A stretch of DNA of 64,000 nucleotides from Octopus sinensis (taxonomy: Eukaryota), in assembly GCF_006345805.1 (NCBI RefSeq), contig NC_043004.1:48112001-48176000 (forward strand), written 5' to 3'. A program made the position numbers and the translations under genes. The notes beneath the pieces were generated by a model that saw only the letters and a list, made by a program, of their open reading frames with translations, was not told the origin of the DNA and made no database searches. Below are positions 2,595 to 60,008 of the stretch, piece after piece. Numbering within the stretch: the stretch's first letter is position 1; every line of letters begins with the position of its first letter.

Positions 2595-4080
2595 TTAATT
2601 ATTTTTAGAATCTTTTACTTTTTTAAGAGCCAAAGTTTTTATAGCTTTCCTATCAAACTTACCACTAGCCAAAAGTGGAAATGAAGGAAAATATAAAATG
2701 TAATCAGGATGCATCGATACACAATCAAAGTTCTTTGGTTGTGGCATTGTTTCTGTACAAAACTTTTTTAATTCTTCTTCATTGAACTCGTGATTTGGTC
2801 GAATGGTAACACATGCGCACACACGTTCACCAACCTCCTCGTCAGGAATTGGTACAACAACCACAGCATCTACGTTCGGTTGACGTCCGACATAATCTTC
2901 AATAAGTTTAATCGATAACTTTACCGTACACTTTTTGATAAAATCTGTACTTCTTCCAATCATTATGATGTCACCATCTTTAGTTAAGTAACCAATATCT
3001 GACGTTGAATACCATCCTTTTTCTAGACACGAGGTGCCATCAAGAAATGTTTTCGTCGTCCACTTACTTCGAAAATATAAATAGCCTGTCTTTCCAATAT
3101 CCACAACCCTCTTCTCCTCGTCAACAATTTTGATTTCTGTTCCTTCAAGTGGTCGCCCGAGCATTCCTTGTCGATGTTGTGACATGTTTTCTGGAGTAAA
3201 AAATCTACTGGATATAATCAAAGCTTCAGTGGCTCCATAAATAATTCCAAATTCATCTGCAATTTTAAAAGAATACTCTATTGCATCATGTGTAAGCATA
3301 TCTCCACCGGATAGTACCGTCTTTACACGAAACCCACGATTGCCAAGTCGTTTCAAGTCCTGTGGTGCAACACCCACAATAGTACATTTCTCTTGCTGCC
3401 ATAAATTTACTACAAAATCGAAATTCTTCGTATCGTTCAACATTTCTACATCTCCAGTGACGTGTTTGGCTCCCTTGGTTAAGAGCAGAAACGGATATCC
3501 TCCAATATATCCCATTGGTCGACCGGAAAATAATACATCAAAAGTAGAAATACTAGTGCCACTAACAAACTTATCTGGTAGATTTATAAAGTTGAAATGG
3601 CTGTGACATATACGTTTAGGTACACCTGTGGTTCCTGAAGTCTGATTGATGGATGCAATATCTTCCGGGTCAATGTAAGGAAACTCAACCTCGTCATCGT
3701 CACTTACTTCTGCCATCAATTTAGCAGCAGATAAAGCATTGGCTGGTCTGTGAGAATTGGACACATCAATGGCAAACCTCAAATCGGGACACGCTTCGCA
3801 AGATACTTTTCCATTATTGTCTATTTGTGCAATGGATAAGAAACTGTCCCAAATAGATTTGGAACCAAATACTACGGCACTACAACCTTCTATAACAGAT
3901 TTTATATCTGCTAATCCAAACATTAATCTCATAGAATATGCTCCAGTCATCATGATTCCAATATCGTAGCTCATCCATTCCACACAGTTAGGAACACAAA
4001 ATGCAATCTTGTCTCTTTTTTTAATGCCTAGTTTCATCAAAGCCTTTGCGAACTTCACAGCTCCATCGTGCATTTCTTTT
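2595..4080 (-). CDS. ANL-superfamily acyl-CoA synthetase-like (ACSF2/4CL/luciferase-like) enzyme, copy 1, large terminal coding exon 2
   Basis: 492-aa ORF with P-loop QTSGTTGVPK, A5 YGATE, A7 TSDIG, A8 GRSTDFIK and A10 LASGK. Minus-strand acceptor ttgtctttgcAG lies immediately 5' of 4080; the exon starts A|AAA GAA ATG (phase 2) and ends at TAA 2595-2597. Confidence 0.93.
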
Positions 4081-5117
4081 CTGCAAAGACAAACAACGTT
4101 ATGAGTATGTATGCTTCTTAAAATCAGTATTAATCACATAACATAGAACTCACATTGACATCTTCAATTAAGCGATCGCTATGTATTCATTGCCTTGATT
4201 TTGAGAAAACTTCTTGTGCTCTTCACCTTTGCAGGTTATCCGAGACATCGAGCTCGGTGCGGTTAATGCCTGGATTGACACTCACACTGTTACATATCGA
4301 GAAGATCTTTATGAACACCATCGTTTTCGTGACACAAAATGGTGCGGCACCACGTCCTGTGTGATATTTTACGAAGACCCCCCACTGCCGCTTGACAACC
4401 GGTGTTGGTCTGTTTATGTCCCCATAGCATAGCGGTTCGGCAAAAAAGACCGATATAATAAGTACTAGGTTAAAAAAAATAAGTCCTAGTGTTGATTTGT
4501 TCGACTAAAACCCTTTAAGGCGATGCTCCAGTATGGCCGCAGTCAAGTGACTGAAAGAAGACAAAAGATTAAAGATTTATATAAACTGCAAAAAGACAAG
4601 TGAACCTTCAATTTTAATATTCCTTTCTGCAACAGAATTTTAATATTCCTTTTCAGGCACAAGGTCTGAAATTTGGGGGTTAGGGGACTTGTCGATTACA
4701 GTCCTCGACTGGTAGTTATTCCATCGACTCTGAAAGGAAGAAAAGCAAACGTGACCGCGGGGAAATATGAACTTGAAACGTAAAGACGGTCAAGATGGCG
4801 CTGAGCATTTTGTACGGCATGCTTACAATTCTGCCAGCTCGACGCCTTCTTCCAAGTAAATATTGGTTTCAAATTTTGCAACACGGACCAAACAATTTCG
4901 AAAAAAAGGGTAAGTCGATTACATCAACTCCATTGCTGCTACAATACTTATTTTATTGACCGCGAAAGGATGAAAGGCAAAGCTGACCTCAGCAGAATTT
5001 GAACTCAGAACGTAAAGACGGATGAAATGTCGCTAAGCATTTTCTCCGGTGTGTTAACGGTTCTGCCAACTCGCTACCATAATAATAATAATAATAATAA
5101 TAATAATAATAATAATA

Positions 5118-5565
5118 GATTTGCTTGTCATTTGTTTGACCTTAACCAGTTGAGCATGTCCCTTAGTGGCTGACGATATGTGCATCTCTGATCACGAGCA
5201 GAAGTAGTGGGGAGCATCATAGCCATGTGTTGAGAGGGATTCGTTGGGGTTTGAATAATTCACCTCTGGAAACATGGGTGGTTTTTTCAACATCCTTAAA
5301 CAACCCTTATTCAGGGACCGTTTGAGCAGGATGGGCTACTCAACCTGAAGAAAATTCTAACTGGGCCCACTTGCAAGCTCATGTGCTGTTTATCTTGATA
5401 TGAGATCACCATGTCGCGCTCATATGGTTGTGATGCATGTGCCTGGTGTACCCTTATCAGACGGGTAGTCATGATGGGTATATTGGGCTTCGTATATTTT
5501 ACCCCAGTGTTACTTTGATGGCATGAACTGCTCTCTCACTCAATAATAATAATAATAATAATAAT
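5118..5565 (+). mobile_element. SINE or LINE 3' fragment with RTE-like tail and (AAT)n end
   Basis: Ends ...gatggcatgaactgctctctcactc(aat)n and is flanked by (AAT)n. Confidence 0.55.
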
Positions 5566-6215
5566 AGTGCTTTCTACCATAAGCACAAGGCCTAAAATTT
5601 GGGGGAAGGGGGATAGTTGACTGCATCGACCCCTTTGCTCAAATGATACTTATTTATCGACCCCGAAAGGATGAAAAGCTAAGTCGACCTCAGCCGAATT
5701 TGAACTCAGAAGGTAAAGACAAACGAAATGGCGCTAAACATTAACGATTCTGCCAACTCGCTACCTTAATAATAGTAATAATAATACTTTCTACTATAGG
5801 CGTAATGCCTGAGATTTATGGGATGGGGCACTAGTCGATTACATCGACTCTACTGTTTGACTGGTACTTTTTCTTCCCCGAAAGAATAAAAGTCAAAGTC
5901 GACCTCGGTGGAATTTGAACTCAGAATGTAGCGACAGACGAAATACCTATTTCTTTACTACCCCCAAGAAGCTATTGCACTACTTGTTGGGGAGAAATTA
6001 CAACTTAAGAGAACAAAAAATGGTGGGGCAAACGAACAATGGTGGAAACGACGCATTGAAAGGGACATAATGCGGGCAGGGCAAGATCTAGGAAAAACTG
6101 AGCAGTGGTTAGCAAGGAACATAAGATACTGTGGTATTTTACAATCCAATGTGAGAGGCTCGGAGACCAGAAGGTAAAAGTAAGCCAGCTAGAATTTTGA
6201 GATTGGTACTTTGAT

Positions 6216-57980: not shown

Positions 57981-58454
57981 ACATTATTAATTAAATTATA
58001 CGAAAATTAAAACCAAATACCATTGAGTTGAATGTTGTAATGATCACACACACACATGCGCACAGAGATTCACACACACACACACACACACACGCACACA
58101 CATATATATATATATTGTTCAAATGTACAGAAAACTAAAGACAATGACAGGTGAGAGAACAACAAGCAGCCCCAGAACAATGGAGAAGTCTTTGGCAGAA
58201 AGGGATAAGGGGGAGAAATGGAAAGACAGCTAAAAAACGGAAACAGCAAAAATTGTTTGTTGAGATTAATTGTTCAACATGATGAAATGACCCGAAGAAA
58301 GAGGTTGAGTGAAGGGGAGATAATAAGAGTGAATGTATGTATGTATGTATGTATGTATGTATGTATGTATGTATGAATATTTGCATGTACGTATGTATGT
58401 ATGTATGTATGTAAGCATATACACATATAAATATATTTAACGAAGCATGTCGCC

Positions 58455-58460
58455 TTTATT
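58455..58460 (-). terminator. Candidate polyadenylation signal AATAAA of copy 3
   Basis: tttatt on the + strand, ~85 nt past the stop. The site homologous to the copy-2 signal is mutated to AACAAA. Confidence 0.35.
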
Positions 58461-58543
58461 TAGAAGGAAACCTTAGCACGTTAACATGTTAAACATGGAA
58501 AACTAAAATACACGTTTGTTAATCTTGGTAATTTAATTTATTA

Positions 58544-60008
58544 CTACATTTCTTTAATTTTCTGATAGGCCAAGCATTTTATAATCTTTTTGTTAAACTT
58601 GCCACTGGCCAAAAGTGGAAATGAAGGAAAATATAAAATATAATCAGGGTGCATCGATACACAATCAAAGTCATCTGGATCCGGCATTGTTTCCGTACAA
58701 AACTTTTTCAATTCTTCTTCATTGAACTCGTAATTTGGCCGAACGGTAACGCACGCGCATACACGTTCTCCAACTGCCTGGTCAGGGATTGGTAAAACAA
58801 CCACAGCATCTACACTCGGATGACGTCCAATGTAATCTTCAATAAGTTTAATAGATAATTTTACTGTACACTTCTTAATAAAATCTGTGCTTCTTCCAAC
58901 CATTATGAGATCACCATCTTCAGTTAAGTAACAAATATCTGATGTTGGATACCAACCATTTTCTAAGCATGAGGTGCCATCCAGATATGTTTTTGCTATC
59001 CATTTACTTCGAAAATACAAATAGCCTGTCTTTCCAATATCCACAACTCTCTTCTCCTCGTCAACAATTTTGATTTCCGTTCCTTCAAGTGGTCGACCCA
59101 AAATTCCTTGTTGATGTTCCGGAATGTTTTCTAGTGTAAAAATTCTATTAGTTATGTAGAAAGATTCAATACTTCCATAAACAACTAAGAATGAATCTGC
59201 AACCTTCAAAGCATTTTCTATTGTATCCCGGGTAATGATGTCTCCACCTGACATTATCATATTGACACGGAAATCGCGGTCGCTCAGTCGCTTCACATCT
59301 TGTGGTGCAACATTAACCATGTTACATTCTTCACTCTGCCATATCTTTATAACAAAATCGAGGTTCTTCGGATCATTCAACATTTCTACATCTCCACTGA
59401 CATGCAATGATCTTCTGGTTAGCACAGACAAAGGATATCCTCCACCATATCCCATTGGCCGACTGCTAAATATGACAAGAGAAGTGTCCTTAAAATCTAA
59501 ATCCTTGTTGTTTAAGTATTCAAAATGGCTGTGATAAATACCTTTGGGCACACCAGTGCTTCCTGAAGTCTGATTGATGGATGCAATATCTTCTGGGTCA
59601 ATGTTAGGAAACTCAACTGCGACATCGTCGCTTACTTCTGCCATCAATTTAGCAGCAGATAAAGCATTGGCTGGTCTGTGTGTATTAGACACATCAATGG
59701 CAAAACTCAAATCAGGACACGCTTCGCAAGATACTTTTCCATTATCGCTTATCTGTGCAATGGATAAGAAATTGTCCCAGATAGATTTGGAACCAAATAC
59801 AACAGCACTGCATCCTTTTATAATAGATTTCATATCTGCTAATCCAAATATCAGTCTCATAGAATATGCTCCCGTCATCATGATGCCTATATCGTAGCTC
59901 ATCCATTCCACACAGTTAGGAACACAAAATGCAATCTTGTCTCCTTTTTCAATGCCTAGTTTCATCAGAGCCTTTGCGAATTTCACAGCTCCATCGTACA
60001 TCTCTTTC
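58544..60008 (-). CDS. ANL enzyme copy 3, intact large terminal exon; exon 1 lies outside the window if present
   Basis: Paralogous ORF (QTSGSTGVPK, YGSIE, TSDIC, LASGK) with the same acceptor context as copy 2, 5' of 60008, phase 2, stop TAG at 58544-58546. The ORF-track extension to 60052 is intron read-through. Confidence 0.88.

Follow-up and report, generated by a model that had tools for sequence, protein, structure and literature searches.

A tandem array of ANL enzyme cassettes in Octopus sinensis that appears to share one first exon, with flanks homogenised by gene conversion and two divergent islands

We analysed a window of 64,000 nucleotides from Octopus sinensis (contig NC_043004.1, positions 48,112,001 to 48,176,000 of the forward strand), in which three intact open reading frames (ORFs) on the minus strand, c1 (2595-4073), c2 (43882-45342) and c3 (58544-60052), encode related enzymes of the ANL adenylate-forming superfamily. 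An earlier note, made from the sequence alone, had described them as tandem paralogs whose substrate pocket is hypervariable and under diversifying selection. Our analysis points instead to an array of terminal-exon cassettes, the outer parts of which are kept alike by gene conversion while their differences gather in two islands of the central segment.

The family assignment is firm. All three ORFs matched Pfam AMP-binding (PF00501) and AMP-binding_C (PF13193), with E=3e-40 to 4e-35 and ~3e-8, and c1 and c2 carry the motifs TSGSTGVPK, YGSTE, TSD, GRSTDFIKK and SGK, which represent the A3 P-loop, A5, A7, the A8 hinge and the A10 catalytic lysine. The A5 motif of c3 is YGSIE, so that the conserved threonine of YGxTE is lost; YGSIE is also found in O. 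vulgaris c3, and the threonine is kept in O. bimaculoides c3. An AlphaFold2 (AF2) model of c3 joined to its presumed first exon (mean predicted local distance difference test score, pLDDT, 90.2; predicted template modelling score 0.87) shows a large N-domain followed by a small C-domain. Foldseek matched this model to CahJ, 4-coumarate-CoA ligase (4CL) and luciferase with E=1e-38 and template modelling scores of 0.76-0.80, the structural matches listed being CahJ, PchD, FscC, luciferases and 4CL; the top sequence match in the Protein Data Bank was the aryl-acid adenylating enzyme DhbE (5e-25). Like DhbE and CahJ, the octopus copies have the two-domain fold, motifs A3, A5, A7, A8 and A10 and the catalytic lysine, and the A4 sequence of DhbE (NYPLSS) resembles the octopus A4 (GYPLS), but identity to any solved structure is only 17-22%. 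c2 shares 100% identity with an O. sinensis protein and 98% with an O. vulgaris 'acyl-CoA synthetase'; the names 'ACSF2-like' and 'ACSF2, mitochondrial' come from automated annotation only. c1, c2 and c3 are bona fide ANL members, with a predicted ATP-dependent activity on a carboxylate (adenylation).

In all three copies the Pfam match begins only at profile position 25-29, and upstream of the first methionine the frame runs through a polypyrimidine tract and an AG (ttctttgcag/GAAAGAG ATG). The ORFs are therefore terminal exons, each in need of an upstream exon. The proteins consist of a 146-nt first exon (~50 residues) and a single terminal exon of 1.46 kb that supplies the stop codon and a poly(A) signal; the RefSeq proteins of the family open with ~51 residues (MSSYLHTKEDSQVSYETIPERL...HQITMKE) that are missing from the window ORFs. 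The AF2 model places residues 1-51 within the N-domain, as two strands and a helix (pLDDT 84-97), and a cassette deprived of an exon of this type would probably fail to fold.

Only c1 has such an exon nearby. It lies 5.4 kb upstream of c1, matched the N-terminus of the O. vulgaris c1 orthologue (P0012) at 100% by tblastn and contains the sole exon-1 core motif within the window; a further in-frame ATG occurs upstream, at 9673. Since this exon is homologous to exon 1 and its donor is in the phase needed by the c1 acceptor, c1 is a complete two-exon gene. Upstream of c2 or c3, including the c2-c3 interval, neither tblastn nor a core-motif search found an exon-1 homologue within the window. The O. 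bimaculoides c1-orthologue model P0008 has an odd N-terminus, MLNVGNARRLVIIQ, 13 of the 15 residues of which are matched by a short segment within intron 1 of c1 (9081-9125, minus strand). This segment may represent an alternative first exon, or conserved intron sequence that the gene predictor has taken up.

The first exon expected for c3 was found outside the window. The locus of a related O. sinensis protein (P0004; locus L001) lies upstream of the window on the same chromosome, without overlap, and contains one exon 1 (L001 10001-10146) followed by four cassettes at 10982, 14411, 16727 and 19341. Gene calls of 540, 534, 537 and 537 amino acids at this locus all start at that exon, and RefSeq annotates one gene with isoforms X1-X6, among which X1 is exon 1 plus cassette a, X2 exon 1 plus c, X5 exon 1 plus b and X4 exon 1 plus c3. 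The layout in O. vulgaris (L006) is a single exon-1 core followed by cassettes a, b, c, c', pseudo-d and c3, with c2 14 kb beyond; in O. bimaculoides (L002) a single exon 1 precedes three cassettes. A second exon-1 homologue was found between the cassettes in none of these three loci. All intact cassettes retain the acceptor ttctttRcag/GAAAGAG with its phase unchanged, and each has poly(A) hexamers within 100 nt past the stop codon, where ~0.2 are expected by chance. Pseudo-cassette d carries a 1-nt deletion that shifts the frame and an acceptor changed from AG to AA, both common to O. sinensis and O. vulgaris, and these defects indicate that unmaintained cassettes decay. c3 thus appears to close a series of five or more cassettes (a, b, c, pseudo-d and c3) that follow one shared first exon, and the RefSeq models together with the anatomy suggest that the cassettes are used as alternative last exons. 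The three ANL copies of the earlier description are real, but they would not be equivalent genes in tandem, c3 being probably an alternative terminal exon whose exon 1 is common to at least four others. The end that it had given, 60008, is the first base of the c3 exon past the splice acceptor.

Some details of the array vary with species or assembly. The extra O. vulgaris cassette c' (L006 10001-11461, P0003), located between c and pseudo-d, is without counterpart in L001 of O. sinensis; either the sister species differ in copy number, or an assembly has collapsed here. None of three 40-mers from O. vulgaris anchors, tried in order to locate the window with respect to L001, was matched, since species-specific transposons are present in the spacer between d and c3. 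In the literature collection searched, no published description of this octopus cassette cluster was found; several of the isoforms are already modelled in RefSeq.

c2 lies 13 kb past c3 and has no homologous first exon; the first coding exon that RefSeq joins to it is unrelated. This c2-specific exon was found by tblastn at 100% in the window and at 95% in O. vulgaris, and was absent from O. bimaculoides; it is young and lineage-specific. Its product is a basic and hydrophobic, presequence-like peptide, which would substitute for the 51 residues that fold into the N-domain, and a partial second copy of the exon is present at 46912-46977. The first exon of a 435-aa c2-like model of O. bimaculoides was also considered; it is without counterpart in the window and looks spurious.

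We then compared the copies along their length. The earlier hand count of differences between c2 and c3 (about 9, about 42 plus an indel, and about 18, from N- to C-terminus) was reproduced in a three-way alignment, which gave 9 differences up to the P-loop lysine, 41 and a 1-residue indel between that residue and GMLGRP, and 18 beyond. The post-P-loop peptides and internal indels quoted with that count were also correct, and the statement that length differences fall after the P-loop held for the internal indels, although the C-terminal tail of c1 is 3 residues longer as well. The excess of differences in the segment from the P-loop to GRP was significant in each pair (chi-square p=1.2e-6 for c2-c3, 2.8e-9 for c1-c2 and 1.3e-13 for c1-c3). 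Within the segment, variability is concentrated in two islands that flank motifs A4 and A5: hypervariable island 1 (HV1, codons 154-200), composed of a short helix, the indel loop (pLDDT 79-85 in the AF2 model) and motif A4, and HV2 (codons 262-300), composed of the strand leading into A5 'YGSTE' and the strand after it. Among seven cassette types, each island has 2.2 distinct residues per column, as compared with 1.2-1.7 elsewhere.

The earlier note had equated the variable centre with the substrate pocket. The segment does include motifs A4 and A5, and HMMER aligned c2 G189-Y190-P191-L192-S193-V194 with DhbE N235-Y236-P237-L238-S239-S240, and c2 A275, L283 and I284 with DhbE V329, V337 and N338. 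These DhbE positions are reported, by May et al. 2002 and in the Stachelhaus code, to be specificity-setting in aryl-acid and non-ribosomal peptide synthetase (NRPS) adenylation domains. The ten code-equivalent positions read GYLGLGIIIK in c1, GYVGIGALIK in c2, GYVNMGVYIK in c3, GYAGMSVTVK in a, GYVNTGALVK in b and GYVGIGGFVK in c, so that the string differs in every cassette; 7 of the 10 positions vary, which is above the whole-protein background of 35% (p=0.011). The first position of the code is glycine, and not asparagine or aspartate. Judged from these alignments, the islands carry most of the specificity-code equivalents, including the most variable one, position 283 (I/L/Y/T/F), and the predicted pockets, each small or hydrophobic, would be consistent with acyl or aryl substrates that differ between cassettes. 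The isoforms may differ in substrate.

The contrast between centre and flanks has its main source in gene conversion. Nineteen cassettes from four species were aligned by codon and examined by regional Nei-Gojobori dN/dS, neighbour-joining (NJ) trees with bootstrap and sliding windows. Between c1 and the cluster, dS was 0.13-0.27 in the N-terminal third, 0.67-0.73 in the centre and 0.46-0.53 in the C-terminal third, while for the orthologous pair Sc1-Bc1 it was 0.29, 0.11 and 0.21, respectively. In the C-terminal third of O. bimaculoides, the c2- and c3-type cassettes (B3-B2) differ by a dS of 0.05, as against 0.26 between orthologues. NJ trees of the centre grouped the cassettes by orthology, with bootstrap values of 100% for c1, 100% for c2 and 82% for c3, and 0% for any grouping by species. 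In trees of the C-terminal third, by contrast, the cluster cassettes of O. sinensis and O. vulgaris formed one clade (100%; 96% with third positions only), with c1 keeping its orthology. The ratio of species-type to orthology-type unanimous quartet sites for c2 was 9:0 in the flanks and 3:18 in the centre (Fisher p=1.5e-5), and sliding windows placed the orthology-preserving segment at codons ~141-320. The recent conversion tract within c3 (Table 1) has a p-distance of only 0.017-0.025 to a same-species paralogue, versus 0.108 to its orthologue B2. Because dS is heterogeneous along the exon and the trees are region-specific, the flanks have been homogenised by conversion and are not simply more constrained. 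These results demonstrate that the centre-flank contrast is largely mosaic concerted evolution, and the copies differ mainly in two islands mostly because conversion keeps the remainder alike.

The distance between c1 and c2 in the window is 40 kb. In O. bimaculoides (CM046608.1), the c1 orthologue (37.55 Mb, L003) lies ~55 Mb from the cassette cluster (92.84 Mb, L002). Either a rearrangement or a discrepancy between assemblies would account for this difference in location, which is in keeping with the small share of c1 in conversion.

The islands also differ from the rest in selective regime. Among paralogues, dN/dS was 0.83 in HV1 and 0.56 in HV2; between orthologues it was 0.62 in HV1 and 0.67 in HV2, as compared with 0.13-0.40 elsewhere. 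Codon models (custom implementation, F3x4, region-specific trees) gave a single-ratio (M0) omega of 0.405 for the centre against 0.197 and 0.211 for the flanks, bearing out the earlier expectation of a higher central dN/dS, by a factor of 2-4. The neutral class of model M1a comprised 36% of central sites versus 16% of flank sites. In the centre, M2a improved marginally on M1a (twice the log-likelihood difference, 2dlnL, 7.21; p=0.027) with 5.7% of sites at an omega of 2.65; in the flanks 2dlnL was 1.9. The sites with a posterior of at least 0.5 (Table 1) all fall within HV1 or HV2, and L192 and L283 among them are at or near code positions. A burst of change after duplication followed by purifying selection was rejected, as a two-ratio branch model gave omega 0.48 for post-duplication branches and 0.48 within orthologue groups (2dlnL=0.00); the deep Argonauta branch had 0.12. 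These codon-model and branch results indicate that constraint on the centre has been persistently weak and that positive selection has acted on a few sites at most. The claim of diversifying selection accordingly survives as faster non-synonymous change in the centre; it does not extend to a region with omega above 1, a clear-cut site class or an excess after duplication. Diversifying selection on the pocket is no more than plausible. In c3, O. sinensis and O. vulgaris differ by 19 non-synonymous and 6 synonymous changes, a pattern that, together with the loss of the A5 threonine, could be relaxation or a functional shift.

We consider the best explanation of the locus, with a probability of about 0.65, to be an ANL cassette array with conversion-homogenised flanks and two orthology-keeping islands, in which c1 is self-contained and c3 is the distal cassette. 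Observed directly were the assignment to the enzyme family, the arrangement of the exons, the presence of one shared exon in each of three species, the regional differences in phylogeny and the dN/dS values. According to this explanation, a shared first exon would be spliced to one of several alternative last exons to yield isoforms; c1 stands apart as a two-exon gene, c3 would be the most distal of at least five cassettes (with one more in O. vulgaris), and c2 would use either the shared exon or its young unrelated one. Within a species, the cassettes are kept similar in their N- and C-terminal thirds by gene conversion. HV1 and HV2 escape it, possibly through selection rather than sequence divergence alone; they retain orthologue identity across species and evolve at dN/dS ~0.6-0.8. 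A more far-reaching version, in which one promoter and a 50-residue first exon serve any of at least six terminal exons, each of them encoding a full catalytic body, the scaffold is kept uniform by gene conversion, selection-protected pocket islands set the specificity and the same arrangement may explain the near-identical variants known from the squid Watasenia, we regard as less likely than not.

Several points weigh against the cassette-array explanation. The evidence for splicing of exon 1 to the cassettes consists of RefSeq models and anatomy, and two of these models, X3 (XP_036361265.1) and X6 (XP_029639698.2), are chimeras with non-canonical junctions, in which a 5' part of cassette c or d is fused near codon 186-193 to a 3' part of c3 without GT-AG. 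Chimeric evidence or an annotation artefact is the probable cause, recombinant haplotypes a possible one, and for this reason the RefSeq models of the locus are not all trustworthy. RefSeq also treats c2 as a separate gene with its unrelated first exon (XP_036361267.1). As to conversion, the N-terminal third is poorly resolved, with orthology bootstraps of 2-16% and species groupings of ~40%, and conversion into c1 is patchy and limited to parts of that third, since the ratio of species-type to orthology-type unanimous quartet sites for c1 was 1:7 in the N-terminal third, 0:40 in the centre and 0:26 in the C-terminal third. As to selection, omega is below 1 in every region, and recombination could have inflated the M2a result, which is itself marginal. 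Divergence by itself can block conversion, so that selection is not needed, and the code positions are not more variable than the central background of 60% (p=0.23).

These points bear differently on the alternatives. That the islands are merely drifting, tolerant loops and strands under relaxed constraint, with divergence and the indel blocking heteroduplex formation and with substrates that do not meaningfully differ, is on the whole unlikely but deserves serious attention: omega is 0.5-0.8 and equal for orthologues, paralogues and all branch classes, the neutral class is larger in the centre, the HV1 loop is modelled with lower confidence, and the code positions show no enrichment over the centre. 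Set against this are the ORFs, acceptors and catalytic motifs that have remained intact since before the split of O. sinensis and O. bimaculoides, as cassette d decayed; the island signatures conserved between orthologues; the location of the specificity-code equivalents, with the most variable position, inside the islands; and the marginal M2a support. Three independent tandem paralogous genes, the central pockets of which were reshaped by positive diversifying selection, would explain the higher central omega, the preference for M2a in the centre only and the position of two candidate sites (L192 in A4, L283 at the position of DhbE V337 and PheA I330), and some young pairs do reach an omega of ~1-1.3 in the centre. 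We nevertheless find this improbable, given the regional omega values below 1, the equality of the branch classes, the evidence for conversion in the flanks, and the fact that c2 and c3 are without a homologous first exon of their own. Least probable to us is that c2, c3 or both are unexpressed or decaying, as incipient unprocessed pseudogenes, leaving c1 and the proximal cassettes as the functional ones. Although c3 has lost a conserved threonine and shows the excess of non-synonymous change noted above (Sc3-Vc3), and a homologous exon 1 is missing within 13 kb of c2, the two ORFs remain intact in three species with orthologue flank omega of 0.10-0.33, the acceptors and poly(A) signals are retained, and RefSeq has transcript-based models for both.

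The cassette-array explanation can be set beside known systems. In UGT1, GCNT2 and the clustered protocadherins, tandem large alternative exons are joined to a shared exon; the variable exons of UGT1 carry the substrate-binding part, with hypervariable regions that map to the acceptor pocket and with little conversion, whereas the protocadherin arrays combine strong gene conversion with specificity regions that are left diverse (PMC1885805). The octopus orientation is the reverse: the shared exon is 5', implying a single promoter, and the variable exons, unlike those of the UGT1 type, are 3'-terminal and each encode ~90% of the enzyme including all catalytic motifs. In the octopus, splicing and polyadenylation would therefore have to determine the isoform, rather than the choice of promoter. 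Drosophila lola and mod(mdg4) and Anopheles gambiae GSTD1 join a common 5' exon set to different alternative 3' exons, in which the specificity part is encoded; lola and mod(mdg4) involve trans-splicing, GSTD1 is the enzyme case, and the protein families differ from the octopus ANL enzymes. A check of the Anopheles GST precedent for alternative 3' exons in the literature collection searched returned nothing relevant.

The closest studied relatives are the crystal proteins wsluc1-4 of Watasenia scintillans, candidate luciferases that belong to the same cephalopod ANL clade; a Watasenia acyl-CoA synthetase is 39% identical to c2. O. bimaculoides proteins were the only matches of these squid proteins above 30% identity, identity of the squid relatives to human ACSF2 was only 24-26%, and for Watasenia transcripts 89-92% identical to one another, alternative splicing and paralogues were not distinguishable to the authors (Gimenez et al. 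2016, PMC4899746). By analogy, a cassette array could account for such near-identical variants. The octopuses studied here are not known to be luminous, and the relationship implies neither crystal formation nor coelenterazine chemistry.

If alternative last exons do supply different pockets, the locus would represent a mechanism of enzyme diversity like that of vertebrate UGT1 but with the opposite organisation, within a cephalopod-specific ANL clade of which the firefly-squid candidate luciferases are the only studied members. It would also illustrate cleanly, in nature, how gene conversion and the maintenance of diversity can act on separate parts of one exon. Automated annotation splits or chimerises the cassettes, so work on expression or orthology needs cassette-aware mapping.

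Table 1 Positions of the exons, islands and associated signals, in window coordinates unless a locus is named
Feature	Position	Strand	Remarks
c1 terminal exon	2595..4080	-	ORF of 492 codons from ATG 4073, plus 7 nt after acceptor ...tttgcag/; stop included; Pfam
c1 own first coding exon	9492..9637	-	146 nt, MASYIHT...HQIT; donor TT/GTAAGT; tblastn
c1 HV1	3474..3614	-	post-P-loop through A4 'GGYP'
c1 HV2	3174..3290	-	around A5 'YGxTE'
c2 terminal exon/cassette	43882..45349	-	486 codons; Pfam; acceptor
c2 non-homologous first coding exon (joined by RefSeq)	47707..47819	-	MSRPCFLYRLLNVLRSCPSLYF...; donor AT/GTAAGT; P0121 = XP_036361267.1
c2 HV1	44752..44883	-	candidate sites Y175, S178, L192 (c2 numbering)
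c2 HV2	44452..44568	-	candidate sites S271, L273, L283, L286 (c2 numbering)
Poly(A) hexamers after c2 stop	43849..43876	-	at +6, +11, +28
c3 terminal exon	58544..60008	-	isoform X4 (P0006) = shared exon 1 + c3; acceptor same as in other cassettes
c3 HV1	59414..59542	-	regional variability
c3 HV2	59114..59230	-	A5 is YGSIE, not YGSTE
c3 recent gene-conversion tract, codons ~201-260	59222..59404	-	near-identical to cluster cassettes
Poly(A) hexamers after c3 stop	58455..58542	-	at +2, +7, +84
Pseudo-cassette d	L001 19341-20800; L006 12593-14052		no poly(A) hexamer until +392

The window as a whole is animal DNA rich in AT and repeats. A DNA transposon of the pogo/Tigger type, recognised by DDE_1 and Tc5 helix-turn-helix matches, is present in two copies that are 93.5% identical, one between c2 and c3 (48625-50000) and one upstream of c3 (61697-63065). 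ORFs for GIY-YIG endonucleases, a domain typical of Penelope-like retroelements, lie at 52329-53186 and 15564-16799. Long (TATG/TACA)n and (TA)n microsatellites occupy 11210-12580, 15180-15560, 53530-53680, 55830-56180 and 63275-63530.

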